DNA from: Schmidtea nova
Taxonomy: Eukaryota
Assembly: GCA_044892505.1 (NCBI GenBank)
Contig: CM097882.1
Location: 250,480,001 to 250,544,000, forward strand
DNA: 64,000 nucleotides
Reading direction: 5' to 3'
The position numbers and the translations under genes were made by a program. Shown here piece by piece: positions 30,466-63,904 of this stretch; the first letter of the stretch is position 1, and the number at the start of each line of letters is the position of its first letter. The notes beneath the pieces are model-generated. The model was not told the origin of the DNA and made no database searches. It saw only the letters and a list, made by a program, of their open reading frames with translations.

Positions 30466-31047
30466 ATGTCACATTTTACAGATATGAGCGAGAACCAAAA
30501 TCGGAACTACAAACAAGAGGCACGAGAACACAAGGCACGTTCCCGAGTCCTTGAGAACCGCTTACGTCAGTTAAGCGATGAATATCAAAGAGTCAAAACG
30601 ACGTGGTTTAATCCCGAGAGGGTTAAGGCCATTCTGCAAGCCAGGTACCGAGCTGAACAGGCAGCCGACGAGCAAGCTAGAGAGGTCACAGCATTGAAAT
30701 TGGAACTGTCGAATTACCTGAGAGTGTCGACCCAAGAATTTATCACAGAGCAGTTACGCTCAGTGATCAGGGCGAGTACCTTCAACCGATGGGTAGACTC
30801 GATAGCGGTTACCGCGAGCACACAGACTGAAATAGAGGCAATCGCAACTACAGCTACCGAAGTAACCACAAAAATTCCACGAGGGTCTCTAAGGACAAAG
30901 CGAAGGAATCGCCTCGGAGCCAAGAAACGTAGAGAGCGTCGAGCCTATGCCGAACGCCTGGGAATTGAGGTTGATCTGCTCAGTGGACTCTCCGAGCAGG
31001 AATTATTGAATGTGATCAGACCATCCGTGTTATTAAATTACAAATAA
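30466..31047 (+). CDS. ORF-B family, intact copy (193 aa; coiled-coil, TWFNP motif, basic tail)
   Basis: Open ORF with homologues at 18780-19250, 23040-23520 and 45130-46370. Confidence 0.78.
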   Translation: MSHFTDMSENQNRNYKQEAREHKARSRVLENRLRQLSDEYQRVKTTWFNPERVKAILQARYRAEQAADEQAREVTALKLELSNYLRVSTQEFITEQLRSVIRASTFNRWVDSIAVTASTQTEIEAIATTATEVTTKIPRGSLRTKRRNRLGAKKRRERRAYAERLGIEVDLLSGLSEQELLNVIRPSVLLNYK

Positions 31048-34538: not shown

Positions 34539-34925
34539 NNNNNNNNNNNNNNNNNNNNNNNNNNNNNNNNNNNNNNNNNNNNNNNNNNNNNNNNNNNNNN
34601 NNNNNNNNNNNNNNNNNNNNNNNNNNNNNNNNNNNNNNNNNNNNNNNNNNNNNNNNNNNNNNNNNNNNNNNNNNNNNNNNNNNNNNNNNNNNNNNNNNNN
34701 NNNNNNNNNNNNNNNNNNNNNNNNNNNNNNNNNNNNNNNNNNNNNNNNNNNNNNNNNNNNNNNNNNNNNNNNNNNNNNNNNNNNNNNNNNNNNNNNNNNN
34801 NNNNNNNNNNNNNNNNNNNNNNNNNNNNNNNNNNNNNNNNNNNNNNNNNNNNNNNNNNNNNNNNNNNNNNNNNNNNNNNNNNNNNNNNNNNNNNNNNNNN
34901 NNNNNNNNNNNNNNNNNNNNNNNNN
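34539..34925. other. Assembly gap (N run) after an (ATA)n tract
   Basis: Direct reading. Confidence 0.99.
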
Positions 34926-35664
34926 TTAGAATTTAGAATTTAAAAGAAAATTATATTTGGTAATTATATAAAAAATTCATGTTTTTAAGTACTTGTTTTA
35001 ATAATATTGTAAATGAAAAGGTTTTTTTAAAAATTTGCATGGTAATTGTAATTGGTTTGAATAGTATGGTTAAATGTGGAAGTTTTTGAAATTGGATTAG
35101 TACTTTTAGTTTTGTGATTATCTGTGGTGGTTAGATTTGAATTTTGCTTGTAATTGTTTTTTAAGGATAATAAAATTATAATTACTAATTATATACATAG
35201 ATTTATGATCAAATTTGCCTTATAAAATCTGACTTAAAGCTTTATAGGTAGGCAATTTGTGCTATACACTTGACTCAATGAGAGCCGCATCCAATTGTAT
35301 TAAAATGCGTGAATTAGAATGATGCGATTATTTGAATCTGGGGAATGAAAGGTACCCAAATACGATTTATGAGGTTTTATGAATTGTGATAGTGGTTATG
35401 ACTTGTGATTGTGAAACAAAGTGTGGGAAACACAGAATCGAACAAATAAATTGTCCTCAAATCGAATAGCTGATCTGAATCGATAAAATCAATATATTTA
35501 GACTGTTATTTACTAATGACGAAGGAAACGTTTTAAATAAATATCAACGAGTCAGAGATCGACTATTAATAAATTAAACAATGTCGATTTCCTGCGAAGG
35601 TACCCAGGCATAATAAATAGAGCAAATAACTGCACATCGTGACTGGTTCGGCGCTTCCAGCTCC

Positions 35665-36140
35665 TATTGCTTTCTTTATTTTCAGCTTGTTGTACCATCG
35701 TTACCATCTTTACGAGAATTATAATATTTGATGTTTCAGGTGGATAATGGATTTCATTCCACATCGTTTCAAACGTATCTAGAAACTCCTTAGAAACACT
35801 TCCGTTTGATGAACATAAAAATTTATGATGTATTGAAAAGGCTTTTTCAAGGCAATATTTACTGCAATATTTGGCACCAGACTTTTCACAATTACAAAAC
35901 GGTGATTTCAATGAGGAAATTATACAAAATTGTTTGTTAGGAACAACTAACGAACTATCTTCCGTTAACCGTTTTAAATTCTCATCAACACCCTCAAGAG
36001 GTTTCATACATTTTCGCATGCGCCGGTGCTATACCTTTTGTTCCAGGAATACTGAATCTGAACAAATAAAACTGAATCCTTTTGAATATCAGTTTCAGCT
36101 AAAAGCCCTCGTACGATTAACGGTCCAAAGAATTGTTGAG
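35665..36140 (-). pseudogene. SMYD5: SMYD5 N-terminal/MYND fragment inside the LTR-like unit (copy 1)
   Basis: RGLLAETDIQK...QYSWNKRY...CMKPLEGVDENLKRLT...CEKSGAKYCSKYCLEKAFSIHHKFLC...WNEIHYPPETSNIIILVKMVTMVQQA matches the SMYD5 hallmark W-x-x-I/V-HYPPET. Frameshifted. Confidence 0.88.
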
Positions 36141-36749
36141 ATATCATTTTCCTTGATTTTATGATTTCAATGCGATAGAACGATGCAAAATTTAAATCAA
36201 CCACTCGAAAAGAATAATTTATTTCAAAATCGAAACTCCAAAATTCAATCATAAATTAAACAAATTAAATTCCAAATCGCATTAATTAATTCCAATAGTT
36301 CGAAAAACATATATTCATCCAAAAATCCGAAATTGAAATAGCAACAAATCCATAAATGCAAAGTACAAATCAGAACTAATTCCAAGTTAAATTCCCCAAA
36401 TAAAATTACAATGAATCCCAACAAACGAATCGATTAATCCAAAAGTTAATTTCAAATCCTCTTTTATACAAAGCAATTCATACAATTCATTAATCTAACA
36501 TATTAAATTCAAAGTTAATTCTGCCAAAAACTTTTCATTAGTTCAGCCAAACCAAAATACCCAAAATCTAAAAAGTTTAATAACTTCAAATTTGGAAGAA
36601 ATGTAATTTCGGATTTTCATTGACAGTTTTCATTGAATTTAAATCACAGATTTAACATAGCAATTCGATTCCCACAATGATAGAACTTTATTTAATTTAT
36701 TCCTACCCTTTGCATCAGCCAACAAAACACACATTGAATAAATCAAGAA

Positions 36750-37179
36750 CCAAAAATTTCCCGTTACAAATATTGTCTTTCGTACAACTGCCAATCAGTG
36801 ATTGAATTGTGCTTTCCATTGTTTCGAAATTGATGTTGTAATAGTGGTTAAACATCTTTTCATTTTCTCTTCGTTGATAATAATGGATTCTGAGTTCAAA
36901 TTCTGTTGGCTTTCATTCAACTTTCCATAGTGATCGCTCTGTATATCCGCTAGGGACCTTTTCAAACTTGAAAGCCGTTTATCCATTTCCTCTATGACGG
37001 TGTAATTAGGAAAATATTCACTCTCTGAGAAATCAAAGCCATGTAAATATTGATTAGTAGATGTGTTAGTGGTGTAAGGCTTATCTCCTAAAAAATCCGA
37101 ACTGTTATGACGACTCATGTGGTTTTCACTGTCGACTTTTCGTCTTTCTTTTGATAATCTGTATTTAGTTTGCTATTGT
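36750..37179 (-). pseudogene. Distal part of an unidentified SL-linked mRNA-like fragment (continues from 40076-39942 across the hAT insertion)
   Basis: Removing the hAT and one TSD copy joins ...IDLDLSFL|HNSKLNTDYQKK in frame. ORF 36795-37118 follows. Gene not recognised. Confidence 0.5.
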
Positions 37180-37187
37180 GTAGAAAT

Positions 37188-39933
37188 TAGGGCATCCAAA
37201 ACCGGGATTCCAAAATTCGGTTTCCGGGAAACCCGGACATTTTCTGGAACCGAAAACCGAGATTGAATTTGGTAAAATTTCCCGGTTTTCGGTGCTGAGA
37301 GCAAGCATTTCTCATATTCTAAAATAAGCAAAATACTGTTCGCAGCTTAATATTTACATTACGAAATAATATAAGTACATATTTCCGTTAATAATGACTG
37401 TGAATTAAAAGATTAGTTCAAAATTAAGCCCTTCGATTACATTTGCAAATATAATTCACAGTCTCTTTAAGACAACATCAATATAATAATTAAATTTGAA
37501 TTTAATTTGATTTATTTATAACTATAACAAGTCTTTTGAAAGTATTAAATTTACTCTAAAGTTATATTGTGTTTTTTTTATATGTGAGTTTTTTTATAGG
37601 TTATATATATTGTATTTTTTATGTAGTGTTATTTTTATTGGTCACTCGGAAGGTCGGAAGTAAATCAATCAAAAGTGTCCAGTTTAATCTTTAAGGCAAG
37701 TAAAATTTTTATTATTATAGAAAACATAAAATTATAGCAAATTTTTTACAACCCAATACTAGACATGTCTATAAAAAATATCAAATTTGAGGAATGCAGC
37801 CAGCGGCTGATTGAAAAAACTCCAGTATGGGAGTATTTTCTCCGTGACAACAATTCTGGTGAGTTTGCGAAATGTAAACGATGTGATAAGCCATTGAAGA
37901 CAACAGGTGGTTCAACAAGTTCCCTCCATAAACATATTACATCTATTCACAAGATCATAGTAAAACCTGTGAAGAGATATGCTTCTGTAAGTACAGCAGC
38001 AACATCAACTGCACCACCAGAAAAGCGCAGAAATGTACACAGTTCTACGCTAACAAACTACCTCATCATTCGTGACAACACTCTTGAAGCGGTATTATCT
38101 CGTATGACAGCCGGCGATGGTTTACCATTCAGAATTTTCATTAGTTCAATTGAGATGCGCAAGTCGCTAATAGCGCGTGGATTTGAAGTTCCAAAATCAG
38201 CTACAACAATTCGAGACATGGTAATGAAATATGGAAAAATAATTCGGGAAAAGTATAAGGTTGAATTACAAGGTTTGAAATCCCAAGGAAAGCTATTTAG
38301 TCTCACTTTCGACGAGTGGACTTCGTGTAAGAACCGACGCTATTTAAACATAAATGCGCACATTAAATGTAAATTTTGGAATTTGGGACTGGTACGAGTG
38401 CGAGGATCGTTGCCTGCAGAATGCTGTATCAAACTTATTGAAGAAAGGCTGCAAATATTTGGCTTGAATTTGCATGAAGACATCATTTGCATTACAACGG
38501 ACGGTGCCGCTGTAATGCAAAAGTTTGGGGAAATATTGACCTGTAAGCAGCAACTCTGCTTCGCTCACGCAATTCATTTAGCAGTATTGGATATCCTTTA
38601 TCAAAAACCTAAACCAGCTCCAGCTGGTAACGATGACGATGACTGTATTTCAGATGGTGATGGTAATGGTGACGACGATCAAGACGAAGGATTTAATCTT
38701 GAATTGGAAGCGAATGAACCACAACTGTGTGAGAATTTTTATGATCTTATCCGCAAAATTAGAACTGTAGTCAAGCTATTTCGTAAATCACTACTAAAAA
38801 CGAAATTCTTCAAAAATACATCAAAGAAGAATTTGAAAAGGAATTGCAATTGATAATTGATGTAAAGACAAGATGGAATAGCCTTTATAGTATGCTTGAA
38901 AGATTTCGTAAATTAAAAAACAACATTCGAAAATCTTTAATAGATCTCAATTCAAGTTTTTCATTCGAAGACGAAGAGTGGAATATGATTAATGATTTAG
39001 TAACAACACTTGAACCAATAAAATTAGCTGCAGAAGCTTTATGCCGCCGAGATGCGACATTATTAACAGCTGACACGACAATTTTGTTTATGATAAACAA
39101 CCTAGGTTGCAGTGAATTTGCTCTGCAAATGAAGGACTCGCTTTGTTATCGCATAAATCAACGACGAACGAAAGTGGCTAGTTTGCTGCAATATTTACAT
39201 AAAAGCAAACAAGATTATGCGGAACTGGATCCAGACTCCGTTTTAAACTTTGAACATTTGACAAAGTCAGCGATAGCAAACATGATAATTGGCCTATCAA
39301 ATCCACTCGAAGGAAGCCAGCAGTCATCTGAGTCGGACTCAGACAATGATCTTGAAATTGGAATAGAATTGTCGTTGGAGGAAAAGCTTAACCGTGCCAT
39401 TACCAAGGATGTAAATTCCACTATTACCCCACCAACAAAAACAAATAGAGACATAACTAATGTTATAAAAAAAGAATTGGCTATTTTCGAACTGGAGGGC
39501 AATCGTGGAAAGAATCTCCAGACCTGTTATGAAAACTTGTTATCCATTCCACCTACGAGCGTAGATTCAGAGCGCGTATTTTCCAATTGTGGTATGGTTT
39601 GTACAAAAATTAGATCATCACTAAACGATCAAAGTTTAGACATTTTAAGTTTCTTACGAACACATTTTAAAACGGAAGCGCACATTTAGAGAAGCTAATA
39701 ACTTTTTATTTATTAAATTGAATTGTGTTTATTTATATATTGAATTTCTGTTATTTTATTTTTGTTCCTTTATTATAATAAAAATTATTTATAATAAAAA
39801 TGCTTTTTTACTTATAATTTATTATTTTTTTATTTACATTTTCAGCACCGGTTCCAAAACCGGGTACCCGATTCTGGAACATTCTAGCACCGAAAACCCG
39901 GTTCCAAAAAAATTCTCGGTTTTGAATGCCCTA
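37188..39933 (+). mobile_element. hAT transposon (2746 bp), near-intact
   Basis: TIRs TAGGGCATCCAAAACCG / CGGTTTTGAATGCCCTA. 8-bp TSD GTAGAAAT at 37180-37187 and 39934-39941. Confidence 0.95.
37765..39689 (+). pseudogene. hAT transposase with BED finger and a single 1-bp frameshift near 38791
   Basis: VWEYF...CKRC...LHKH, LTFDEWTS, ITTDGAAVM, CFAHAIHL, TRWNS, PPTSVDSERVFS. Restoring one C gives KSPTKNEILQKYIKEEF. Confidence 0.93.
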
Positions 39934-40076
39934 GTAGAAATGATAAATCAAGATCTATGCGAAATCCAGAAACATCTCCGTAACTTCGACTTAATCTTTT
40001 ATTATTAATAATCAAGATAAATTTGATCAATGAATGTTAGGAGCGATTGGGGAGTTACATTTGAAATATTCGTTTC

Positions 40077-40117
40077 CATATAGATTTATATAGATTTCGA
40101 TAAGACTGTCTAACGGC
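40077..40117 (-). other. Spliced-leader exon copy A
   Basis: GCCGTTAGACAGTCTTATCGAAATCTATATAAATCTATATG differs by one substitution and one deleted T from the planarian SL as recalled (GCCGTTAGACGGTCTTATCGAAATCTATATAAATCTTATATG). Not followed by a GT donor. Confidence 0.9.
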
Positions 40118-40222
40118 TTCCAGGCACGCCCCACAATCTCTCACAGCGATCAAGCACCCAAATAATTATTTTAATTATTATTTAATTAATTTTAAAAATA
40201 TTTTAAGAGCGGGCGCGATCAT

Positions 40223-40350
40223 CTCGCTTTTACATTCTTGATTGTGTCACTTGATTCAACTTCCAGGGTAATAGTTTTAACTGATAAAGTTCTCACAAAC
40301 ATCTGTATACCACCTCTACATCGTAAACCCAATTGCAAAGTTGATTCCGT
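40223..40350 (-). pseudogene. Polyubiquitin junction fragment
   Basis: [41 protein letters not shown] versus [41 protein letters not shown]. Confidence 0.88.
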
Positions 40351-40399
40351 TTTATTTTCTTTCATTCGCGGACTATGCTCTTTTAAACCTGTACTTGCA

Positions 40400-40830
40400 T
40401 CACCACTTGGCATTGAAGAAAAACACAAACATTCCGCTACTTTAGCTTCATTTACACTGTCTTCATGAATACCCACTTTAATATTTTTAGTAACTTGCTC
40501 ATAAAACTTTTTATAATTAGCTTCGTATTCTATTACTCGTTCAAAAAGTTCTAAACCTTTTCTCCCTAATTCTTTTCTGATTACTTTCAAATTCATATTT
40601 TGTTGCAACATTTCCCGGCGGATATTCAATAGAAAATCTCCACTGACATAACCGGTCCACCTACTAACCTCTACACCTTTAAATATCAACTTATCTTTTT
40701 CAATACAAATTGCTTCGTAAGCAGGTGACACAATTTCATCTCTTTGTCCACTCGACACATCAAATGAACCCTGTCTACTATCAGCATTATCAAAATCTTT
40801 AGGAAAAGCCTGCTTCTCATCGCTCTCGTA
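40400..40830 (-). pseudogene. ORF-U (post-PBS ORF), 5'-deleted copy
   Basis: Near-identical to 43313-43690. Joined to the PBS remnant through a short tandem duplication and deletion. Confidence 0.7.
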
Positions 40831-40869
40831 ACTAATGGTTCGTAACCAATGGTTCGGCGCATCCAGCTC

Positions 40870-41345
40870 CTATTGCTTTCTTTATTTTCAGCTTGTTGTA
40901 CCATCGTTACCATCTTTACGAGAATAATAATATTTGATGTTTCAGGTGGATAATGGATTTCATTCCACATCGTTTCAAACGTATCTAGAAACTCCTTAGA
41001 AACACTTCCGTTTGATGAACATAAAAATTTATGATGTATTGAAAAGGCTTTTTCAAGGCAATATTTACTGCAATATTTGGCACCAGACTTTTCACAATTA
41101 CAAAACGGTGATTTCAATGAGGAAATTACACAAAATTGTTTGTTAGGAACAACTAACGAACTATCTTCCGTTAACCGTTTTAAATTCTCATCAACACCCT
41201 CAAGAGGTTTCATACATTTTCGCATGCGCCGGTGCTATACCTTTTGTTCCAGATATACTGAATCTGAACAAATAAAACTGAATCCTTTTGAATATCAGTT
41301 TCAGCTAAAAGCCCTCGTACGATTAACGGTCCAAAGAATTGTTGA
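40870..41345 (-). pseudogene. SMYD5: SMYD5 fragment (copy 2)
   Basis: Part of the ~885-bp block 41733-40850, which differs from 36533-35644 at about 7 positions by eye. Confidence 0.88.
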
Positions 41346-42089
41346 GATATCATTTTCCTTGATTTTATGATTTCAATGCGATAGAACGATGCAAAATTTA
41401 AATCAACCACTCGAAAAGAATAATTTATTTCAAAATCGAAACTCCAAAATTCAATCATAAATTAAACAAATTAAATTCCAAATCGCATTAATTAATTCCA
41501 ATAGTTCGAAAAACATATATTCATCCAAAAATCCGAAATTGAAATAGCAACAAATCCATAAATGCAAAGTACAAATCAGAACTAATTCCAAGTTAAATTC
41601 CCCAAATAAAATTACAATGAATCCCAACAAACGAATCGATTAATCCAAAAGTTAATTTCAAATCCTCTTTTACACAAAGCAATTCATACAATTCATTAAT
41701 CTAACATATTAAATTCAAAGTTAATTCCGCCAAGATAATTAAATTAATACGAATAAACAAATCAAAAATTTTAATGTTTTTAAATTCTAAAAATTCCCCA
41801 ATAAAATCCGTTAACTCAGAAAACCAAAATCAAATCTAAAAATCTTTTCAAATTCACCAAAATCAAGTCCCAGTTTCTTTTTTAAATTCCAAAATCCCAA
41901 ATTACATTCACTGATTCATATAAACCAAATCAAAATCAATTTCTAAAAAACAAACATCAAATTAAAGTTTTACTAATCAATTCGAATAATTGATTTATTT
42001 CCATCAGCGAAATTCCCCTCTCGCGTCTGTGTGCGCACCCAAAGCCAAATAGGTATCACACAACCACCGCGCACACAGACGTTGTTGCC

Positions 42090-42264
42090 TTCTAGGAATA
42101 ATGTTTCTGTTGGAGACATTTTATGAAACTACTTTTTGTATTGATGATTTTTCACTCCTTCTTAGACCCATTAAAAGTATTCGTGGATATTCATCATTGA
42201 TAGATTGATTTTCCAAAGTATTGCTGTCGCATTGATAGTGGAAATTATCAGAACTATCCATTGT
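42090..42264 (-). pseudogene. RRAGC/D: RagC/RagD (Gtr2-type) GTPase 5' fragment, in frame with the SL-terminal ATG
   Basis: MTMDSSDNF...[21 protein letters not shown](2-bp deletion)FHKMSPTETLFLE versus [33 protein letters not shown]. Confidence 0.92.
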
Positions 42265-42307
42265 CATATAAGATTTATATAGATTTCGATAAATCCGTCT
42301 TTACGGC
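42265..42307 (-). other. Spliced-leader exon copy B
   Basis: GCCGTAAAGACGGATTTATCGAAATCTATATAAATCTTATATG. The last 28 nt are identical to the recalled planarian SL. Confidence 0.9.
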
Positions 42308-42342
42308 TTCCAGGCTTACTCGACAATCTCTCACAGCAGTCA

Positions 42343-42564
42343 AAGCTCTAGAAATGGTGAGAGAAATTCCAGCGGTTTTAGTTCTGATAGATCATTTATC
42401 TGAGATAATGTAGATTTAAGGCTCGATAAATTACTGTACCACGGATCTGACATTTCTTCTTGATAAGAACAAATTGCGTTGCCTTTCATTCTTCTTTTCA
42501 TGGCCGCCAACAATAGTGTTACTTCTAATTGAACGACATATTTAGCATCTTTCTTGCTGGTCAT
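42343..42564 (-). pseudogene. GBF1: GBF1 (Arf-GEF) N-terminal fragment
   Basis: KYVVQLEVTLLLAAMKR...QEEMSDPWYSNLSSLKSTLSQINDLSELKPLEFLSPFLE versus IYIIQGEINIVVGAIKR...DEERDPLLHSFSHLKEVLNNITELSEIEPNVFLRPFLE. Confidence 0.85.
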
Positions 42565-42579
42565 TTAGAATAGATATCG

Positions 42580-42621
42580 CATGAAAGATTTATATAGCTT
42601 TTCATAAGTCCGTTTAACGGC
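42580..42621 (-). other. Spliced-leader exon copy C (diverged)
   Basis: GCCGTTAAACGGACTTATGAAAAGCTATATAAATCTTTCATG, 35 of 42 identical to the recalled SL. Lies 15 nt before the GBF1 ATG. Confidence 0.82.
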
Positions 42622-42726
42622 TTCCAGGCTCGCCCTACAATCTCTCATAGCGATCAAGCATCCAATTAATTCTTTTAATTATTATTTAATTAATTCTAAA
42701 AATATTTTAAGAGCGGGCGCGATCAT

Positions 42727-42977
42727 CGCTCTGTAATTATGAAAAGTTTGGTGCCAAATATTGCAGTAAATAAAAAAAGCCTTTTCAATACATCATAAAT
42801 GTGTATGTTCATCAAACGTAAGTGTTTCTAAGGAGTTTCTAGATACGTTTGAAACGATGTGGAATGAAATCCATTATCCACTTGAAACATCAAATATTAT
42901 GATTCTCGTAAAGATGGTAACGATGGTACAACAAGCTGAAAATAAAGAAAGCAATAGGAGCTGGATGCGCCGATCCA
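42727..42977 (+). pseudogene. SMYD5: Truncated LTR-like 3' end with a degenerate SMYD5 fragment (copy 3, opposite orientation)
   Basis: MWNEIHYPLETSNIMILVKMVTMVQQAENKES, ending GGAGCTGGATGCGCCGATCCA. Confidence 0.8.
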
Positions 42978-42978
42978 T

Positions 42979-42996
42979 TGGTAGCAGAGCGTGGTT
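42979..42996 (+). promoter_or_regulatory. Primer-binding site, initiator-Met tRNA type
   Basis: TGGTAGCAGAGCGTGGTT, 18 nt, 1 nt after ...CCA. Same pattern as animal iMet PBS (TGGTAGCAGAG...GGTT). Confidence 0.8.
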
Positions 42997-43096
42997 CCCT
43001 TCGGGGGGCCACGCACGGCGGGTAAGCTTTTTGATTGCTTATAGCGGTCACAGCGCCGCATTATATTCTAAAATGTTTAAAATTTGAAAATTAATA

Positions 43097-43790
43097 ATGA
43101 ATTTAATGGGGGGATTTAGTGCTGTAATGGGCCCCAGCGACCATCCCCTTCCCTTAAGCTCAGTTGGGTCTGAGAATGAAAATGGTTGGTATACTGAAAA
43201 TACTTATTTGAAAAAGGTTATTAAGCTTGATGGTAGCCGTAGTAATAAATCAAGCATGCTCTTTAGTGAGAAACTTAGGGATACGTATGATAATCCCACA
43301 AAGCTTGCATGGGGTTACGAGAGCTATAAGAGGCAGGCTTTTCCTAAAGATTTTGATAAAGATGATAGTAGACAGGGTTCATTTGATGTGTCGAGTGGAC
43401 AAAGAGATGAAATTGTGTCACCTGCTTACGAAGCAATTTGTATTGAAAAAGATAAGATGAGATTTAAAGTTGTAGAGGTTAGTAGGTGGACCGGTTATGT
43501 CAGTGAAGATTTTCTATTGAATATCATCCGGGAAATGTTGCAACAAAATATGAATTTGAAAGTAATCAGAAAAGAATTAGGGGGAAAAGGTTTAGAACTT
43601 TTTGAACGAGTAATAGAATACGAAGCTAATTATAAAAAGTTTTATGAGCAAGTTACTAAAAATATTAGTGGGTATTCATTGAAGAGCGAAATGAACATTT
43701 AGGGAGATTAGAGATAGACAAAAGCATTGAAAGCCAAGAGAGAGAAGTACAGCCAGAAAGAACAATTTAACTTTGGGATGTTGTTTATCT
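43097..43790 (+). CDS. ORF-U, uncharacterised ORF in the gag position after the PBS
   Basis: 201-aa ORF 43097-43702. Comparison with the 40400 copy suggests small indels near 43670 and a native end ...[35 protein letters not shown]. No Gag motifs recognised. Confidence 0.55.
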
Positions 43791-44680: not shown

Positions 44681-45129
44681 TCCAAGATTCGACTTGCGGC
44701 GAGGCTTGCGACGATTGGATATTGGAAGAAGCGGACGTGATACGAAATCCCCGAACTGAACAACATTTAATTGTAGTATCGTGGGAAAATGCATTAATAA
44801 AATTTACTTGTGTCAGTTAAATTTTTGTTTATGTTTGTAGTATGCTGGATTGTTCGTAGGATGGGTGAAAGATAAATGAGTTTGGAAACCGAAGTGGTGC
44901 GAGAATGACGAAAAGAAGGATAACGACGGACATGAAGTGATTGATGCTAATTGATAGTATGAGTATGATTGTATGGAAATAGAATAAGGAAATATAAAAC
45001 TGACAATAGGCATGGATATAGAATCGTCGGAGGATTATTAAGTTTTATACAGGGACAATCGTCACGCTAATGAAAATAAATAAATCGAAAATTTTCCATT
45101 GATCGGTCTTTTTCATAACTTTTAGACGG

Positions 45130-46370
45130 ACAAACTTAAATTAAAAAGCGATAAGAGCGCCGAACACCAGCTACAGCGACGTATTAGGCTGCTCGAAGGA
45201 AGGATCAATCGGCAAGCATTAGAAATGGATAACTTGAGGCAAACATGGTTTAGTTCCGCCTCAATAAACGAAGTATTGCAAAGAAATGATCGTATAAAAC
45301 AAGCATTAGGAGAACAGACCGCGGAACTGTGCTACTAGATTAGAATTGAATAGATGTCTGAGAACCGTCTCAGGTGACTTCGTGGAGAAGTATTTAAAAG
45401 AGCAAATCCGCTCCAGTACCTTTGATCGATGGTGGCCAGGCAAAATGTCCGCGGACAAAATGTCACGGACAAAATGTCATGAGGACAAAATGGCACGGGA
45501 CAAAATGGCACGGGACAAAATGTCACGGACAAAATGTCATGAGGACAATCAAACTTCTTCTCCGTCAATTGGAACTGGGAACAACGGCTGGGAGGAAAAA
45601 GAAAACATACATCCGCGTCAACGAGGCATTGCATGTCATGGTGACCGACTACAACAACCGAGATCCAATCACATATTTAGGAGACATTGCACGTGTTTTA
45701 AACATTAATGTTGTTTGACTTCATTAGTTATTTTCATTGATAAAAGACTCGATTATTTATTTTTAAAAGCGTTTTTAAAATAACCTAATAATGTTATAAG
45801 ACTAAGCTATTTTATTAACTGAATATCTAACACTAAATTAATATAGGCTAGATATAATTATTATAATAAAGTTAGACTAAATTTGATAAATGCATTATTG
45901 AAATATTTTCATTGTTTTTCTGTCTTATATTTTTTTTCCGAAATTTTTTGTCTGTGAGTCCGTGACATTTTGTCCTCATGACATTTTGTCCGTGACATTT
46001 TGTCCGCGGACATTTTGTCCCGTGCCATTTTGTCCTCATGACATTTTGTCCGTGACATTTTGTCCGCGGACATTTTGTCCCGTGCCATTTTGTCCTCATG
46101 ACATTTTGTCCGTGACATTTTGTCCGCGGACATTTTGTCCTAGCACCTTGATCGATAGGTGCTGAAGAGGGCGACCACAGTTGAAACCCAAACGAATTGT
46201 TCAATAGCATCTCAACCGGTGCAGGTAGTTGAAAAGACATCATCTACTAATTCGACGAAAAGAAAGCCATAGAAACGAAATCGGCTTGGTGCCAAAAAAC
46301 GAGGGAGCGAAGTGCGTTTGCTGAAAGATTGCATATTTAAGTAGATTTACTAAGTGGGCTATCTGAGTGC
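45130..46370 (+). pseudogene. ORF-B family, copy 4, split by a MITE (tail duplicated at 49548-49780)
   Basis: QLQRRIRLLEGR...QTWFSS...LELNRCLR...QIRSSTFDR | VLKRATTVETQT...KRNRLGAKKR..RERSAFAERLHI*VDLLSGLSE. Confidence 0.82.
45431..46147 (+). mobile_element. MULE-type MITE (717 bp) with tandem-repeat TIRs
   Basis: Ends GGTGGCCAGGCAAAATGTCCGCGG / CCGCGGACATTTTGTCCTAGCACC. 9-bp TSD TTGATCGAT at 45422-45430 and 46148-46156. Arrays of GGACAAAATG units. Internal MULE C-terminal relic YIRVNEALHVMVTDYNNRDPITYLGDIARVL. Confidence 0.92.
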
Positions 46371-46734
46371 TAATGTTCTGTGGTCACACCAATCCATCAA
46401 ATAGTGTTTTGGAGTCTTTATTATTATGTCGATGTATCTCTTGTTTCATTGTATATTTTATGCACCATAATAGCTCTCGTTAGTAATGTTTGGATATATT
46501 TTTCACTGTATGTGTTTATTTGTGTCTGTTTGAATTAATAATTACTAATTTTGATTAAATAAACTAATCTGTTTGTTGATGATAATATTACATACTTTGA
46601 TTAGAGATGTGATTATCATTTAATGCCTTGTCTTATTTATATTTAATGTTGTGTAATTATATATGTAAAAATTTTGTAATACTGAATATTTTGTTATTTT
46701 TATAAATTAAAAGTTGTTTAAAATATGATGTTAA

Positions 46735-46816
46735 CCCTTTCGCGGACAATGACGTGTATACACGTCATACTACTGCGTCATACTACATCAACTAAAAAAG
46801 TGCGTCCGCGAAAGGG
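46735..46816. mobile_element. piggyBac-type mini-MITE (82 bp)
   Basis: TTAA-CCCTTTCGCGGAC...GTCCGCGAAAGGG-TTAA. The opposite foldback arm has the empty single TTAA site near 49190. Confidence 0.93.
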
Positions 46817-46994
46817 TTAAGCGGATACCACTCACGATAAATTGTAAAAAAATATATATTAGTTACTTGAAATAAAATTTAAAAGATATCTGAATTATTG
46901 AATTTTTTAATAACTAAATAAAGAGATATATTTATTCCATTCAAAAGTACCTTTGACACTTTAATTCAAAACTATAGTTACTAAATTATAAATT

Positions 46995-48095
46995 ATGGAT
47001 TCTATGATGTGTGCTTATGATAGATACTATGAATGCTTCCTAAAAACAGCTGATTATAAACTATTGAGGATATGCTTCAAATGTTTATCGACTATTGCGG
47101 AAAACAATCAACAATTCCGTAGATTGACTAGAACGAAATATCTACAAGAATCATTTGATTCGATATCCAACAGTTTTGATATAATCTCTTCAATCGAATG
47201 TGAACCATTACGTGAGGTTATGTCTGATTTGTCAGATGACATGACAATGGAAATTGTTGTCAATTACAATGAATTATGCTGTAAATTAATAGTACTGATG
47301 TTAGAGCGGGTTGATGAGAAATTGACAATGAATTGTTTGTGCAAATATGACAGCAAATGCTTAATGACTATCAAATTACTTTGCATTCATCCACATTCGC
47401 TTTTGATGGCATTTGCACACGACAATAAAGGCAAATTTTTTCAAGACCTCGCAATGATGCTGGGTATGAGTAATGATTATATAAAATGCGTTGTTTGCTA
47501 CATCTTGAATGTGCCAATTGACAAAGACCCGGGACTGGTCTCCTGCCTGAGGATGGAAGACCCATCCAGTCTACTGGTTGATATCATTATCAACCGTGAT
47601 ATCATTGCCAATCACCACCTGTGCACCAATGCGACAATTTTAATGATAATTTTTCTACGAAGCAGTGCTTCATTCCATGGATGTTTAATGGACATCGTGC
47701 AAACTTCCTTCGTAATACAAAAATTGGTTCTGACATATGATAAAGAAATTGTTTACGCGAAATACGGAATAAAAATTCCGGACTTATTACTGTCTGAAGA
47801 ATCCAATGGTGATATTGTTGCTCATTATTTCACACAGTCATCAAACGTTACAGATTACTTATTCGACCTCCTCATTACTGGTAAAAGTTTAATACCGCGC
47901 GTTATTAAATGGCTGAAGACATTTGTCAATTGTAAAATATTCTGTCAAACAAGTATTTGCGCATATGGTTTGACAAATGTCCTTCGGTGTTGCCCGAACT
48001 ATCTAGACGTACAACATGTAAAAACACAAGAATTAAAAATCGCCGTTACTAATATAAAAAATTACATTAAATATATGTTTTTATTCAAATTATAG
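46995..48095 (+). CDS. Intronless 366-aa predicted helical-repeat (ARM/HEAT-like) protein, unknown
   Basis: Long open ORF rich in Leu/Ile/Cys. No family recognised. The 5' half is duplicated inverted at 48512-49011. Confidence 0.6.
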   Translation: MDSMMCAYDRYYECFLKTADYKLLRICFKCLSTIAENNQQFRRLTRTKYLQESFDSISNSFDIISSIECEPLREVMSDLSDDMTMEIVVNYNELCCKLIVLMLERVDEKLTMNCLCKYDSKCLMTIKLLCIHPHSLLMAFAHDNKGKFFQDLAMMLGMSNDYIKCVVCYILNVPIDKDPGLVSCLRMEDPSSLLVDIIINRDIIANHHLCTNATILMIIFLRSSASFHGCLMDIVQTSFVIQKLVLTYDKEIVYAKYGIKIPDLLLSEESNGDIVAHYFTQSSNVTDYLFDLLITGKSLIPRVIKWLKTFVNCKIFCQTSICAYGLTNVLRCCPNYLDVQHVKTQELKIAVTNIKNYIKYMFLFKL

Positions 48096-48099
48096 AATT

Positions 48100-48630
48100 A
48101 TGAATGGACTAGAATCAGACAATTATATCAGCGCAATCCGATTTATTGGACAAGCATTTTCTAATAAGAAAGCCTTCAGTGGAACACTCCCTTATGAGAT
48201 CCTTCTTGGGGGATTACCCGATGATTTCGATCGACCTTTGGTTTGGCCTGGAATTCATCTTACGTTTCTATTTGGCATAACTGAGTGTATGGTAACAAAT
48301 TTCCGTAAATTGAATACAACCTATAAATATTCCAAAACAAAAGTATTATTAAATTTATTTGTAAGATTACATAAAATTAAAAGCGAGGAAACAAAAATAA
48401 AATTGATGAATCGGCAACCACACCAAAAATCAGAATACCTTGGTGTGATTTCCGGTTCATCAAAATGGTGTGGTTGCCGATTCATCAATTTTATTTTTGT
48501 TTCCTCGCATTACAACGCATTTTATATAATCATTACTCATACCCAGCACCATTGCGAGGTCTTGAAAAAATTTGCCTTTATTGTCGTGTGCAAATGTCAT
48601 CAAAAGCGAATGTGGATGAATGCAAAGTGA
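48100..48630 (+). CDS. Unknown ORF starting 4 nt after the previous stop; C-terminal part reads into the inverted arm
   Basis: ORF track. Native sequence only up to 48511. Confidence 0.4.
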   Translation: MNGLESDNYISAIRFIGQAFSNKKAFSGTLPYEILLGGLPDDFDRPLVWPGIHLTFLFGITECMVTNFRKLNTTYKYSKTKVLLNLFVRLHKIKSEETKIKLMNRQPHQKSEYLGVISGSSKWCGCRFINFIFVSSHYNAFYIIITHTQHHCEVLKKFAFIVVCKCHQKRMWMNAK

Positions 48631-50302
48631 TTTGATAGTCATTAAGCATTTGCTGTCATATTTGCACAAACAATTCATTGTCAATTTCTCATCAACCCGC
48701 TCTAACATCAGTACTATTAATTTACAGCATAATTCATTGTAATTGACAACAATTTCCATTGTCATGTCATCTGACAAATCAGACATAACCTCACGTAATG
48801 GTTCACATTCGATTGAAGAGATTATATCAAAACTGTTGGATATCGAATCAAATGATTCTTGTAGATATTTCGTTCTAGTCAATCTACGGAATTGTTGATT
48901 GTTTTCCGCAATAGTCGATAAACATTTGAAGCATATCCTCAATAGTTTATAATCAGCTGTTTTTATGAAGCATTCATAGTATCTATCATGAGCACACATC
49001 ATAGAATCCATAATTTATAATTTAGTATTATAGTTTTGAATTAAAGTGTCAAAGGTACTTTTGAATGGAATAAATATATCTCTTTATTTAGTTATTAAAA
49101 AATTCAATAATTCAGATATCTTTTAAATTTTATTTCAAGTAACTAATATATTTTTTTACAATTTATCGTGCGTGGTATCCGCTTAACATCATATTTTAAA
49201 CAACTTTTAATTTATAAAAATAACAAAATATTCAGTATTACAAAATTTTTACATATATAATTACACAACATTAAATATAAATAAGACAAGGCATTAAATG
49301 ATAATCACATCTCTAATCAAAGTATGTAATATTATCATCAACAAACAGATTAGTTTATTTAATCAAAATTAGTAATTATTAATTCAAACAGACACAAATA
49401 AACACATACAGTGAAAAATATATCCAAACATTACTAACGAGAGCTATTATGGTGCATAAAATATACAATGAAACAAGAGATACATCGACATAATAATAAA
49501 GACTCCAAAACACTATTTGATGGATTGGTGTGACCACAGAACATTACAGAGGGCGACCACAGTTGAAACCCAAACGAATTGTTCAATAGCATCTCAACCG
49601 GTGCAGGTAGTTGAAAAGACATCATCTACTAATTCGACGAAAAGAAAGCCATAGAAACGAAATCGGCTTGGTGCCAAAAAACGAGGGAGCGAAGTGCGTT
49701 TGCTGAAAGATTGCATATTTAAGTAGATTTACTAAGTGGGCTATCTGAGTGCCAACTAATAAATCTGATAGACACTAGTGTATTTTTAAAATAACTGAAC
49801 TTTGATGTGGGTGAAATGTTAGTTATTAGTCAAGCTGGGGGTTATAGCTTTTTATGTTGGCGGGATTACCCTAATTTTTACATTAAACAAATGTTTAATA
49901 TCGCCACCAACACTTCAACAGGATTATGACTGCCAACCATTCACGAGAATGGCGGTGAACAATAATCAAAAGTATGATATTTATGATGTATATGGAATAT
50001 TATACGTGGCATCTACCCTTATTTTAATAATCGCCCTGGACGATAGGGTTTTGGCAGTTAGTTTTGACCTAAACAAGTTGAAAATAAGAAAACAGAAATT
50101 AAAAACGCAATACGCAATTGCAAATGGTTATAGTACAACTGAAGTACACCTTTACTATGTTCCTGGACCAGGTCACGATGACCTGGACTTCTAACCAATT
50201 CAAGTTGCCTACCAACAACGCCACAGAATAAATGTGTAAATACAACAGACTTTATCATATGTGATTCATTTGACCTTAATTTTTGATCAATGTGATTTTT
50301 AA

Positions 50303-54826: not shown

Positions 54827-56391
54827 TTGATACCAAGTCTGTCTTCAGCAATACTAATGAAGTTCAACTTCCCTCGACTCATCCATCTTTATCGCACAAA
54901 ATATACTCGTGCGATCGGAGATAAAGTTGGATCACTGCTTGTCAAAACACCTTTCAAGAAAAACCAAAAGTGCCGGGAAACTTTCACTGACCATGCAAAA
55001 GCGCCGTACCATTTACGATCAGTTGAAACAGCAAAAACTCTTCGTGTTATCAACAAAAATTCTGAAATAACCATTGAAAGACTATTGACGATGCAGAAAG
55101 AACTTGAACGAAAGCAGAATTTTGTTCTTTTGAAAGGAATTTTTGACACCATCAATTATCTCGCTCGACAGTCGTTACCATTCCGAGGACACAGATATTC
55201 TGGTGGGATCTTCAACGACCAAAAAGGCATCAACGACGGAAACTTCAGAAATCTGATTAGACTTCTTGTTTCGAGGGACGAGTTTTTCCGGAATGCATTA
55301 GAAAATTCGCCGAAAAATGCTACCTACTTAAGTAGTACAATGCAGAATGAAATAATCGTCATGATGAATGAGATTGCGTTGACGAAGATTCTTCAGAAAG
55401 TGAAAAAGTCCGAATTCTTCTCTATTCTTGCCGACGAGTCATCGGATGTTTCCGGAATAGAACAAATGTCGATTGGACTCCGTTTCATCGACATTGATGA
55501 CGGAAATATTGTTGAAGCGTTTTTAATGCTCACAGATTTGGGCAATGTCATTGCCAAAGGACTTACTGACTCATTGTTAAGCGGAGCAAAAACGATGAAG
55601 CTACGAATGCAAAAGTGTCGAGGAATTGGATTTGATAATGCAAGAGTGATGAGTGGAGAGAAATCAGGGGTTTCGGCAATAGTTCGCCATCAATTTCCTT
55701 TAGTTACTTACGTACATTGCTTCAGTTATCGATTGAACTTGGTCATTGGAGAAAGTTGCAAAGTAAAGCAGATAACTCTGTGTCTTAGCACAAATAAAAT
55801 TATCTACAACTTCTTAAACTCACCGAAAAAACAAGTTGAATTTGGCAAATCTATCGAGAAAACAACACCGGAAACTGCTAGGAGAAAGCTAGAGAACACT
55901 TGTGAAACGCGCTGGGTTGAATTAGTCGAGAACTCAAAGAAAAATTTCGAGAAAACACAGTGCTAGCAAATTTCAAAAATCTTATGTTCAACCCTAAAAG
56001 AATGTTAAGCGGCGAAGTTCAGAATAGTCTTCAGCAACTTTACCATTTCTACACAGAAGATTTGAACGGATCACTGCAGATGTTTTTCGGTGAAGTTGAG
56101 ATGTGGCAGAAAAGACTGGGAAATGCAACTGTAAAACCACAAACTGCGATGGACCACCTAAAAACACGCCCTCAAGATATGTTTCCTAACGTGTTCCAAT
56201 TACTGAAAATCTATAATGTGATTCCTGTAACAACCGCTGACGTCGAACGCTCTTTCAGCAAAATGAAACAACTTAAAACGGACGACAGAAACACGACAGG
56301 AGAGGACGTAGAGAGCGCACAAGAATTAAATTTAAAATTCTTTGGGCTAAAACACGAAATAAAACATAGTAATCACAAAACTCAGAAATAA
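54827..56391 (+). pseudogene. ZMYM1-like (DUF4371) hAT transposase, internally deleted
   Basis: LPFRGH...GNF, NATYLSSTMQNEII, FSILADESSDVS, FDNARVMSG, HCFSYRLNL, CETRW, then FPNVFQLLKI...VTTADVERSFS. Confidence 0.9.
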
Positions 56392-60492: not shown

Positions 60493-60543
60493 TCATCCGA
60501 AATAATCCCGAGCCGTCGGGTCATAGAAATCGTAGGGGTCATC

Positions 60544-60575
<32 letters not shown>

Positions 60576-63500
60576 GAAGCTGTTGTTGAAGCTGTTGTTG
60601 TTGTTGTTGAAGCGGCTCTCGATCACCTACAAATATAGTGGTGTCACCCCCCATATAATGACCATACGCCAAACTTTTATTTTTTTCCACCCAGTTCCTC
60701 TTATCATCCCTACAAGATAAGGCCCTCTTATTACTTTTTATACTAAAGAGCTGATGGTTTTTGCTCGTAATGCGGAACTGGGGGACATTGTATATTTTAT
60801 CATTTAAAAAACAGTCAAGGTAAGACTGGTGTGTGAGACCTGCATCTTTCAAACAGATCCCCTTCGCTTTCATGCAGGCCTCGTCTCCCATCAGGCTATA
60901 ACATTTAGGTCTTAAGAAAACCCACTCATCATACAGTAGACCCTTGTTCTCGTAATTAGAGGTGTCCAAAAGCCTATCGCGAATCATTGCAGCTAAAAGA
61001 GTGTCCAAAGGCAGATTTTTGATTTCTAAGAAGAAGGAATCAGTATCCCCAGCAACGATGTTAATTTCGCAGTTGAAGTCGTTACGATATTTTTGTAACT
61101 CTTCATACTGCAGCTGGTACATACGAAGTTTGGATAAATCCAGTACGGTTTGTCCGATGTAGCTGGGTCTATCCAAACATACTGATTCCTTCTGAAGCAA
61201 TACGGAGATGAGGTCACTGTCGATTTTGTTAGTTTTTTTAAATTTAGGTTTAGATGTGTAAGTCAGCAGTTTTTGTGCCGAGTTACACAATCTTAAATTG
61301 ATTCGTTTTTTTAAGTTCTCTACGGTTTTGCCGTAGAGACTATTATTTAATAATTTATAAAAATTCTTATCGAGCTTATTTGTTGATGCAGCTCGTAAGT
61401 CTGTGTTAATTTTAATATAATTAAAAAATATTTTACTTTGCGAAAATTTAATTGCGCGATAAATGTGTGTTACTTTAACACCAATTTTAATAAATAGTTG
61501 CAGAAGCCGCCAATGAAGAACATAATTCTTCTTTGGAAGATGCGTTAGCAACAGCTTCTCAACCTTGGATCCCGGTGCACACATCTTTTCAGCGGCAACT
61601 GGAAGATCATCCAGTTTGTCGTGAATCGATGCCGGAATTTCCAAATCCACTTCTATGGTGTAACCATAATGAAGTGTATCGAGATTTTCCGATGTGCACT
61701 CACAAACGATTTGATTTAATAATTGGTCATCAGTGACCCACTCAAAATTACCACATGGCAAGGGTTGGCTTAAGGCCCACCCATATAAATTATTTATGTC
61801 AATATATAATAGTGCGGTATCCGGGCTCGTCTTGACATAATGTTTATTGACAAACGTTAGTCCGCCGCGAATACCGCCCTCGAAAAAGTTATACATCTCC
61901 ATATCGGTGAGGAGCTCGATAGGAGAGTCAAGAGTTAATAAAGCGGAACTCCACGACATGCCGGGAATTCCGAGAAAATTTAAAGGCTCAAGCCTGTTAT
62001 GGTTAATTTATTTAATTCGAAATTGCTGAAAATAGTCAGCTAACAAAAACACAAAAACACACAAAAACCATCATGTAATCGTACAGTGATGTACATGAGG
62101 TTTCTTGCCATATTTTATGGGCAGCAGCATACTCGACAGCAGTTATATCTTTCCACTTGGGTGGTAAACACAATGTAGATTTTAAAACCTCTAAAGAAGT
62201 GGCAGCGTCGTAAGGAAATATGCCCTTGGCCGTGACTATAGTACCGCGAAATTCTGAGTTTGTTAAAGGTAACGAAGTAAGGGTTTTTACCGCGTTATTT
62301 AGAGACTCACTCACAAACTGATACGAGTCTATAAATTTTACAGTGAGGCTATCGATGTACGCGAAAAGACTTAAAAACTTTTCGCTGGTCAAGGGAATAC
62401 AACTTATATTCCACGTGTTATATTTCGAAAGGCCGTATTTTAATATATGGTGTAAATCGTAACCCTTCAAGTTGTGAAAGATAACGGGCAAAGAGTGTCT
62501 TATTGGCCTGGATTTGTTGCACTCTGAGCAGGCTGCTCCAATATAAAGACCGGTGAAATGGTCGTGATCCCTAACAGGTACCACTAAAAGCTTTTTACAT
62601 AAATAGCAATTAGTGCTATTGTCAAATTCTCGCTGTTGGGTCGCAGTGATCGTCATGCGCTTTTTGTAATTTTTATAGTAATAGGGTGTCACTATATACC
62701 GACTGATTGACTCAATTTCTCTTAGGAATTGGTCAACACAGTCTAACCCTACAAAAGACTTGTAAATTCTCACCCCAGTAAAGTTGTTAATCAGAAGGAG
62801 ACCTGCGGCAATAGGAAGATGTTTTTGGTGGTGAACAGTGTCTTTGGGTAATATTGCCTCGAAATCAGCATATATTACGAAAGGAGGAGTTACTGTTTTC
62901 TTCCAATCAGTAAACTCTAAAAATTTATTTTTGGGTAATGTGTAGAGGGTGGTACCCAACTGATTTTTTGTACAAAGACCCTTATGACGATTAAAGGCTT
63001 CGTCGTTCCTAAAGCCATTCAAGCAACGAGTGCACCATTTGTTGCAAATCCTAACTGGGGTGATGGTACTATTCCGGCAATTCAAAAAACGATTAAGGTC
63101 AGTAATCGCGAGATAATGAAAATTATCTTTTTTCTCCAAAAGAAGTAAATTTATGGGAATAGCCCCGACTACTTTACTGCGATAAACTATGTCGATAAAA
63201 GGGTGTTTAAGGACGACATTATCATCATTATCGCTATCGCTTACATCAATTTGGGCCTTTTCGTCATATGTAAGAACATTAATGCTGTAGCCACTGTTTT
63301 GCCTCTCGAATTTCTTAATGTTGACTAATTTCATGGGCATGTCATTTGGATCAAATACAAGTTGGGAAAGGTCTTAAGAAGAAACCCTATGTCTGTATTG
63401 GCGTTCAATACTATCGTATTTAACTATAGCTAAAAAGCTATATAAAAAGCAATAGGTGTCGTTATTGTTGACATTAACGAGGCAACTTAAACTTTTTAAA

Positions 63501-63904
63501 CTATTTGGAGTTTCGATATAACTGCTGCCGCTCAACCTACTAATTTCAGAAAATTTAGTGACTAAAAAACTAATATATTCGATTTTAGAGATTGTCCAAT
63601 TACTCCCCTTTTCGTTAATCTGGACAATCTTTTCATTTAAACTAGTGATACCTTCCTCAATAAAGATATCACTCCACTCTCTGGCAGAATTTGAGATGAC
63701 AAAAGATTGTAATTGATCATCTTTCTCAAATTCTACCTTGAGACAAAATTGAATTTTAACTGATTTTAATTTAATAATATATGATTTTAATTTCTCTATC
63801 AATATATCCGGTACAGAGACTGTTTTTAATAATAAATTAGATACGTCCATTTTTATAATAAAATGGGTATCGTTCAAGTCGGAAGTAACTTCAACAATAC
63901 CCAT
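60493..63904 (-). pseudogene. Polinton/Maverick protein-primed DNA polymerase B, disrupted
   Basis: GSNW, GSSYIETP, YADFE, endonuclease-VII-like CYLC...RDHDH...CSEC, FHNLKGYD, DINNLYG, KLLNNSLYGK, GDTDS, LRPKCYS. Stop at 63374-63376, frameshift near 62060, stop near 62020, KxKDE segment deleted, polyQ tail. Confidence 0.95.

Follow-up and report, generated by a model that had tools for sequence, protein, structure and literature searches.

The 64,000-nt stretch of the Schmidtea nova genome considered here (GenBank assembly GCA_044892505.1, contig CM097882.1, positions 250,480,001 to 250,544,000 of the forward strand; "the window," to which all coordinates refer) contains an array of units resembling the long terminal repeats (LTRs) of a retroelement, in which fragments of host-like genes follow a short leader that is probably, judged by its sequence, a spliced leader (SL) of the host. 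An earlier note on this DNA had described repeat units with defined start and end strings, and a string search of the window found these where they had been placed. The 17-nt start string has exactly two matches, both on the minus strand (40205-40221 and 42709-42725, which puts the unit starts at 40221 and 42725), and the 21-nt end string has three, two on the minus strand (35644-35664 and 40850-40870, ending at 35644 and 40850) and one on the plus strand (42957-42977, ending at 42977). Two or more matches to the start string occurred in 0 of 100 shuffles, and shuffled sequence gave none to the end string. The TG or CA expected of LTR-type ends is present at all five termini, as had been claimed, and inspection of the flanks showed T and then TGGT after two of the three unit ends. 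The imperfect inverted repeat said to relate start and end turned out to be weak; for the two minus-strand ends, its gapped local score was matched by 27% of shuffles, and for the plus-strand end, it was reached in 2%.

Both direct units lie on the minus strand and flank an internal stretch of 628 nt. Unit 1 (35644..40221), delimited by the start and end strings and by the homology of its head and tail to those of unit 2, comprises a head, a leader, a stretch of cargo (cargo A) with a nested hAT transposon, and a tail. Because of the nested transposon it spans 4578 nt, of which 1824 nt remain when the 2746-nt hAT and its 8-nt target duplication are subtracted. Unit 2 (40850..42725; 1876 nt), delimited by the same strings, blastn, and the alignment of the leaders, contains, in minus-strand order, a head, a leader of 42 nt, an open reading frame (ORF) of 74 aa, a partial head of ∼36 nt, a further leader of 43 nt, a RagC fragment, a hairpin with a low-complexity stretch, and a tail of 884 nt. 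The lengths of 1876 and 1824 nt agree with the two units of ∼1.85 kb that had been proposed, but the units are not full repeats, as only head and tail are common to both. The 104-nt U3-like heads, each beginning with TG (40118..40221 in unit 1; 42622..42725 in unit 2, placed by the start string and the head alignment), are identical at 97 of 104 positions, and blastn aligned the head regions over 142 nt (40082-40223 with 42586-42727) at 91%. The tails (35644..36527 in unit 1; 40850-41733 in unit 2) match over all 884 nt at 99.2% (877 of 884 identical), each consisting of a low-complexity stretch, a SET+MYND gene fragment, and the last ∼24 nt ending in CA. The middles of the two units (∼800 nt each) gave no blastn alignment and are unrelated; because they differ, units 1 and 2 are not the LTR pair of a single insertion.

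Three copies of the leader, and only three, are present in the window, all on the minus strand, all defined by alignment, and all ending in ATG: copy 1 (40077..40117; 41 nt) in unit 1, copy 2 (42265..42307; 43 nt) inside unit 2, and copy 3 (42580..42621; 42 nt) behind the head of unit 2. Two copies had been counted previously, the one missed being that inside unit 2. In both units the leader starts 104 nt after the TG, as stated before; conservation does not, as had been thought, begin with the leader, because ∼36 nt further upstream are common to all three copies. Directly upstream of the internal leader, this sequence constitutes a partial head (42308..42343, minus strand), which matches the U3-like head over its final ∼36 nt and forms part of a three-copy repeat of 80-82% identity. 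At the other side, the similarity among the three copies halts at the terminal ATG, unrelated sequence follows, and none of the copies has a GT donor behind it. Reported flatworm SLs all end in ATG (PMC12582326); the leader thus has what marks a mature flatworm SL, ending in ATG in three of three copies and being joined to different bodies without a donor site. It is, judged by its sequence, not part of an SL RNA gene, because GT donor, intron part, Sm-site region, and Rfam match are all lacking. Between the units, the leader is identical at 35 of 45 positions (78%), compared with 97 of 104 (93%) for the head (Fisher p = 0.01), a variation that may be expected if the leader was re-sampled from different SL variants of the host and that fits this better than decay of a promoter. 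Both leader variants of unit 2 are predicted to form a 4-bp 5′ hairpin (CCGT paired with ACGG) with differing loops; the variant of unit 1 has a mismatch in this stem and a different predicted fold. The leader may also resemble the planarian SL; this presumed likeness is a lead only and plays no part in the argument.

As the earlier note had it, cargo appears right after the leader: three unrelated host-like sequences begin where the similarity of the leaders stops, and one of them is the N-terminus of RagC. This RagC/RagD N-terminal fragment (42121..42267, minus strand) matched RagC in PDB (E 5.8e-6; residues 60-81 of the human protein) and positions 1-19 of the Pfam profile Gtr1_RagA (E 0.002), and its reading frame opens with the ATG of leader copy 2. 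Leader copy 3 is followed by the 74-aa ORF (42340..42564, minus strand; from the ORF list), which has no Pfam or PDB relative and the stop codon of which overlaps the start of the partial head. Cargo A (36528-40076, excluding the hAT) follows leader copy 1 and includes a 107-aa ORF (36795..37118, minus strand; from the ORF list) with no Pfam family and no relatives of similar length; a PDB match to an occludin/ELL-like protein was weak (E 0.06). Behind the RagC piece, the ORF at 41973-42119 has faint matches to GPX4 and may be another host fragment; as GPX4-like cargo it was rejected, the matches being not significant (PDB E 0.26 and weaker, many entries). At about 42021-42078, there is a hairpin with a 13-bp stem.

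The cargo common to the tails is a SMYD-like fragment with SET and MYND domains, located at 40866..41353 in tail 2, where it was identified by a protein search and by BLASTP of both ORF pieces, and at 35660..36147 in tail 1, where the matching sequence lies (both minus strand). It corresponds to residues 1-165 of a relative, beginning with Met1, is interrupted by one frameshift, and lacks its 3′ part. An exhaustive protein search with the tail yielded 109 relatives, 30 of them below 1e-10, the best being P0117 (379 aa; 63% identity; E 5.8e-44); the SET and zf-MYND domains are carried by these relatives, and in BLASTP, the two tail ORFs covered residues 1-52 and 51-165 of the relative. Over its 165 codons, the piece is colinear with the transcript-like contig encoding this 63%-identical relative. 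That contig (Logan SRR33002330; 1559 nt) encodes the closest SET+MYND relative and has a 5′ end of 56 nt without leader-like sequence.

Between the units (40222..40849, minus strand), a diverged Hsp90 middle domain and a junction of polyubiquitin repeats form an in-frame fusion. Pfam reported HSP90 (6e-27) and ubiquitin; in PDB, residues ∼391-489 of Hsp90-alpha corresponded to query residues 39-137, and residues 62-105 of polyubiquitin to the query from residue 136 (one repeat contributing residues 62-76 and the following one residues 1-29). The alignments to Hsp90 and to polyubiquitin overlap by 1-2 residues. Relative to the element, all six host-like pieces of the locus are in sense orientation (one-sided binomial 0.016). 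Four of them lie inside the units and correspond to the 5′-terminal portions of mRNAs; the other two, from the region between the units, are internal fragments. What remains as element-specific DNA in each unit is the head of ∼104 nt, the leader, and the end of ∼24 nt, which together have the size of a TRIM-type LTR; the primer-binding site adds to these.

This primer-binding site, of the initiator-tRNA-Met type, had been proposed for one of the unit ends and was located there, on the plus strand (42979..42996; 18 nt), one base after the CA and as its sole occurrence in the window. It matches the complement of the 3′ end of human tRNAiMet, which may differ from that of the host, at 16 of 18 positions, including the first 11 of 11; both mismatches fall into the T-stem part. 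For the comparison, the reverse primer for human initiator tRNA-Met printed in bioRxiv 10.1101/2021.12.17.473132 was used. The sequence therefore supports assignment of 42979-42996 as a putative iMet-type primer-binding site. ARAGORN detected no tRNA in the window.

The tail upstream of the primer-binding site is a third copy, inverted and 5′-truncated, of which the last 256 nt are left (42722..42977, plus strand; 92-93% identity to both other tails). It meets unit 2 head to head, overlapping the start of that unit by 4 nt, and continues past the tail into the primer-binding site, ∼330 nt, and an Hsp90-like ORF. This ORF (43097..43702, plus strand; 201 aa) consists of an N-terminal part followed by the diverged Hsp90 middle domain (Pfam HSP90 1e-12); its similarity to the minus-strand copy extends over 43314-43685, with 96% DNA identity to 40460-40832. 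Behind unit 2, where a primer-binding site would be expected, only T and TGGT remain (40826..40856, minus strand; 2.2 copies of a 14-nt unit according to TRF); the ∼330 nt of the plus copy are absent there, and homology to it resumes at 40832. Together, the 14-nt duplication (40826-40856) and the ∼330-nt deletion resemble a scar of microhomology repair. At the other end of the internal region, the last 10 nt before unit 1 are purines except for one C. In the segment 43703-43846, 3′ of the Hsp90 piece of the plus copy, a long purine-rich run precedes 90 nt with 76% similarity to the low-complexity sequence at which the tail begins (opposite strand, 41695-41781). Nesting of the minus-strand element in an LTR of the plus copy was considered and rejected, because the left flank is not LTR sequence and a target duplication is absent. 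The hAT DNA transposon within unit 1 (37188..39933, plus strand), recognized by its zf-BED and hAT dimerisation domains and its terminal inverted repeats, is flanked by identical 8-nt target duplications (37180-37187 and 39934-39941); one frame break divides the transposase frame between two ORFs. It was inserted after unit 1 had formed.

Considering the arrangement as a whole, we regard it as about an even chance (probability ∼0.5) that the locus represents the remains of a family of non-autonomous LTR elements resembling TRIMs (terminal-repeat retrotransposons in miniature), inflated by cargo, with the leader as a host SL at the position of R. In its termini and primer-binding site the region behaves as an element of the TRIM/LARD type, and in its content as an LTR-mediated retrocopy. 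The locus is filed as an LTR-element-derived region and not as an intact member, because neither equal LTRs nor a target duplication nor an autonomous partner could be shown for it. That the leader acts in the role of R and guides the capture of mRNAs is, on sequence grounds, a possibility at best evenly balanced and perhaps well short of that. Still more tentative is the full proposal, according to which a family with short LTRs took the host SL as its R, whereby 5′ parts of mRNAs were routinely written into the LTRs and shuffled, guided by homology.

According to the mechanism proposed for the favored interpretation, each unit would originally have been a short LTR composed of the 104-nt U3-like head, the leader of 41-43 nt, and the end of ∼24 nt, with the host SL placed where R sits in an LTR; insertion of host-mRNA sequence between leader and end would then have inflated the units to about 1.85 kb. 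Reverse transcriptase (RT), primed at the primer-binding site, would copy the short U5, switch to a co-packaged, leader-capped host mRNA, and proceed to the leader at the 5′ end of that mRNA. The complement of the leader at the tip of the cDNA could then pair with the leader copy that the element RNA carries at its 3′ end, and synthesis would proceed into U3, the product being U3, leader, cargo, and U5. If such rounds were repeated, the newest cargo would come to lie beside the leader and older cargo would be truncated, which fits the tail common to all copies and the differing leader-proximal cargo of each unit. The partial head and leader inside unit 2 would be the product expected of two transfers in one synthesis, with a short overlap where synthesis would have switched from the head onto the end of the 74-aa ORF; an internal leader preceded by ∼36 nt of head thus speaks for the leader as R homology. 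To this extent, the idea put forward earlier, that cDNA of SL-capped mRNAs is transferred onto the element, gains from the internal leader, but it draws on one locus, and the transfers, like the packaging of host mRNA and the assignment of U3, R, and U5, are inferred, whereas the pieces with their order, orientation, and junctions are read directly from the sequence. The present array would be secondary, two family members having been joined or recombined via the internal region and their tails converted, and later changes at the DNA level would have comprised the inverted truncated copy, the deletion of the primer-binding site, and the hAT insertion. LTR-mediated capture of mRNA by template switches at microsimilarities is established in animals (PMC5131818), and the mechanism proposed here is best supported as a variant of such LTR-mediated retroposition.

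Several observations weigh against this interpretation. Identical LTRs are expected from one cycle of reverse transcription; identity is uneven in the array, the tails being 99.2% and the heads 93% identical (Fisher p = 0.0002). Together with the unrelated middles, this calls for at least one added step of recombination or conversion. A target-site duplication (4-6 bp) was not found at this locus, the flanks of the outer ends being different, a test that is weak because one outer end adjoins the inverted copy. Among the window ORFs scanned for domains, there was neither gag nor RT nor integrase, nor an autonomous gag-pol partner with matching termini and primer-binding site, and no second locus was recovered, exact strings of the leader and the head start having 0 matches in viral and metagenome contigs. 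In favor of the LTR-type interpretation of the earlier note are the TG...CA ends, the iMet-type primer-binding site, a purine-rich run, and the direct units; equal units, a target-site duplication, and gag-pol were not found. The polypurine-like run before unit 1 is itself ubiquitin coding sequence. As the stretch is repeat-dense and an assembly gap (34539-34925) lies ∼700 nt to the left of the locus, mis-assembly of the array is possible. A relic of the leader upstream of Met1 of the SET+MYND fragment was sought and rejected, because the best local score was 19 and the background in the window reaches 29. A TATA-like motif lies within the leader, 6-8 nt ahead of the point where the similarity ends, and the leader may thus be promoter sequence. 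It had no Rfam match (window at gathering thresholds; 39900-43100 at E ≤ 10, where no SL, tRNA, or ribozyme family was reported), and its strings matched no published SL in the literature searched, including the supplements of PMC12582326; because of this, internal evidence is the basis for assigning it as a host SL. It is unrelated to the acoel SL given in PMC9911081.

The TATA-like motif, which is of canonical form, leads to an alternative, namely that the conserved block of ∼80 nt is no SL at all and instead the core promoter of the element (the end of U3 with its TATA box), with transcription starting downstream and the cargo junctions coinciding with the U3/R border for other reasons. That conservation reaches ∼36 nt upstream of the supposed start of the leader, and that no database or literature match names the block as an SL, would agree with this. 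A promoter should, however, be kept at least as well as its surroundings, and the leader is the most variable part (78% versus 93%). In each of the three copies, the point at which similarity stops is a terminal ATG, the hallmark of flatworm SLs, and the RagC frame begins with it. We hold a promoter to be the least probable of the explanations, and quite improbable. Improbable, if a little less so, is the alternative named in the earlier note, that the element adopted the promoter and SL exon of an SL RNA gene at the DNA level, so that the head would be the sequence upstream of such a gene and this promoter would make transcripts of the element start at the SL. The ∼36 nt of upstream conservation in three of three copies and the absence of a TATA box at −30, as would be expected of promoters of the snRNA type, favor such an origin, which is compatible with the leader at R and not opposed to it. 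Against it, no copy has kept the intron of the SL RNA, the GT donor, or the Sm-site region, and the head starts with TG right after a purine-rich run, as a U3 does.

Somewhat more serious, though still unlikely in our estimation, is that the leader was a passive passenger: an element with short LTRs would have made chimeric retrocopies of trans-spliced mRNAs by switches at microsimilarities, the leader having no R-like role, and the array would have arisen by local duplication, inversion, and gene conversion of DNA. LTR-mediated retroposition is documented across animals, SL-bearing LTR and LINE (long interspersed nuclear element) loci of flatworms have been explained in this way (PMC12582326), and short overlaps occur at the junction of Hsp90 with ubiquitin and at that of the 74-aa ORF with the partial head. 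DNA-level rearrangement is moreover clear from the inverted copy with its 4-nt overlap, the deletion with the 14-nt duplication, and the uneven identities. At three independent junctions, however, a head or partial head lies directly before a complete leader and never before other mRNA sequence. A passenger fits this less well, because random microsimilarity switches would not hit one boundary three times. A Penelope-like pseudo-LTR was rejected on the grounds that no RT domain was present in the scanned ORFs and no hammerhead was reported by Rfam (window, gathering thresholds); the likeness to such elements is limited to the head-to-head truncated copy.

Among known systems, the chimeras generated by LTR-mediated retroposition (Tan et al, 2016; PMC5131818) resemble the locus in that sense-oriented pieces of host mRNA are embedded in, or flanked by, sequence of an LTR element, with short overlaps at the fusions and several parental genes per locus. 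What defines such retrocopies, host mRNA fused to LTR sequence with microsimilarity at the fusions, is found here as well, with overlaps at two junctions. In contrast to those chimeras, most of the cargo lies inside the LTR-like unit and not in the internal region, three pieces start exactly after one common leader, and no sequence of an autonomous element is left. TRIM and LARD (large retrotransposon derivative) elements, for example, ta-TRIM of taeniid cestodes (PMC4558846), have in common with the locus the TG...CA ends, a primer-binding site for a tRNA shortly behind the 5′ LTR, the lack of coding capacity, and a flatworm host; the purine-rich run before unit 1 may correspond to the short purine tract that precedes their 3′ LTR. 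With ∼170 nt, the LTR assumed here as original comes near to that of ta-TRIM (∼198 nt). Unlike the locus, with its iMet-type primer-binding site, its inflated and unequal units, and no target duplication seen, ta-TRIM uses a tRNA-Leu primer and has identical short LTRs and 4-nt target duplications.

In parasitic flatworms, partial or complete leaders without the rest of the SL RNA are likewise associated with LTRs. Such SL-like LTR loci were ascribed to reverse-transcribed trans-spliced transcripts in PMC12582326, in which 597 SL-like loci within LTR and LINE elements were set aside, being discarded without a description of where the leader lies or what follows it; the leader considered here differs in that its position within the unit is fixed and the host cargo behind it varies. 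With genuine SL RNA genes, the locus shares a flatworm-type leader ending in ATG and conserved upstream sequence, but not the GT donor, intron part, Sm-site region, or an Rfam match. Another parallel is provided by the relict spliced leaders of dinoflagellates (mRNA recycling), where mature leaders, also serial ones, are joined to coding sequence in the genome, which is evidence that trans-spliced mRNAs return to it. Those relicts differ in lacking LTR termini and a primer-binding site and in belonging to functional genes instead of fragments inside a repeat.

Copies of the SL inside LTR elements of flatworms are already known (PMC12582326), and what is not described in the literature searched is the combination of a fixed leader position, varying 5′ mRNA cargo, and a partial head-plus-leader relic. 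If the leader serves as R, SL trans-splicing would directly feed the duplication and shuffling of 5′ regions of host genes by retroelements. This would be a route of gene capture specific to organisms with trans-splicing, where every trans-spliced mRNA would share the homology for first-strand transfer. The accumulation of SL-like loci in flatworm LTR elements would be explained by it, and over-long, cargo-laden LTRs would have a testable reason. If the leader is a passenger only, what the locus exemplifies is ordinary LTR-mediated retroposition, though in many layers. For annotation, such loci mimic SL RNA genes and 5′ ends of genes and yield chimeric ORFs, such as the Hsp90-ubiquitin fusion.

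The whole window is rich in transposons. On its left side, an ORF with a MULE transposase domain lies beside a RING-finger ORF (1227-2942), followed by an intact mariner transposase ORF of 347 aa (5339-6382), an 88%-identical copy of which is found in three JGI metagenomes and one Logan run, on short contigs throughout. A 193-aa ORF without a Pfam family (30466-31047) has translated similarity to 45100-45440, to the right of the plus copy; it seems to be this repeat family that terminates the plus copy near 43700. Further to the right, two inverted arrays of 15/30-nt repeats (45408-46170), the arms of which are 87-98% complementary and about 420-540 nt apart, resemble the subterminal repeat arrays of an element. 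They are followed by two 208-nt direct repeats (46166-49755; 100% identical) around a 3.2-kb body that contains long inverted repeats (arms of 364 and 516 nt; 99-100%) and ORFs without Pfam families. This arrangement may represent either a foldback-type element whose duplication is unusually long or an artefact of the assembly. A second hAT-like pair (54827-56391) combines DUF4371 with a hAT dimerisation domain. Close to the right end of the window, the minus strand carries Polinton/Maverick-like ORFs (60493-63904), among them two between which a type-B DNA polymerase is divided, and a stretch resembling endonuclease VII.

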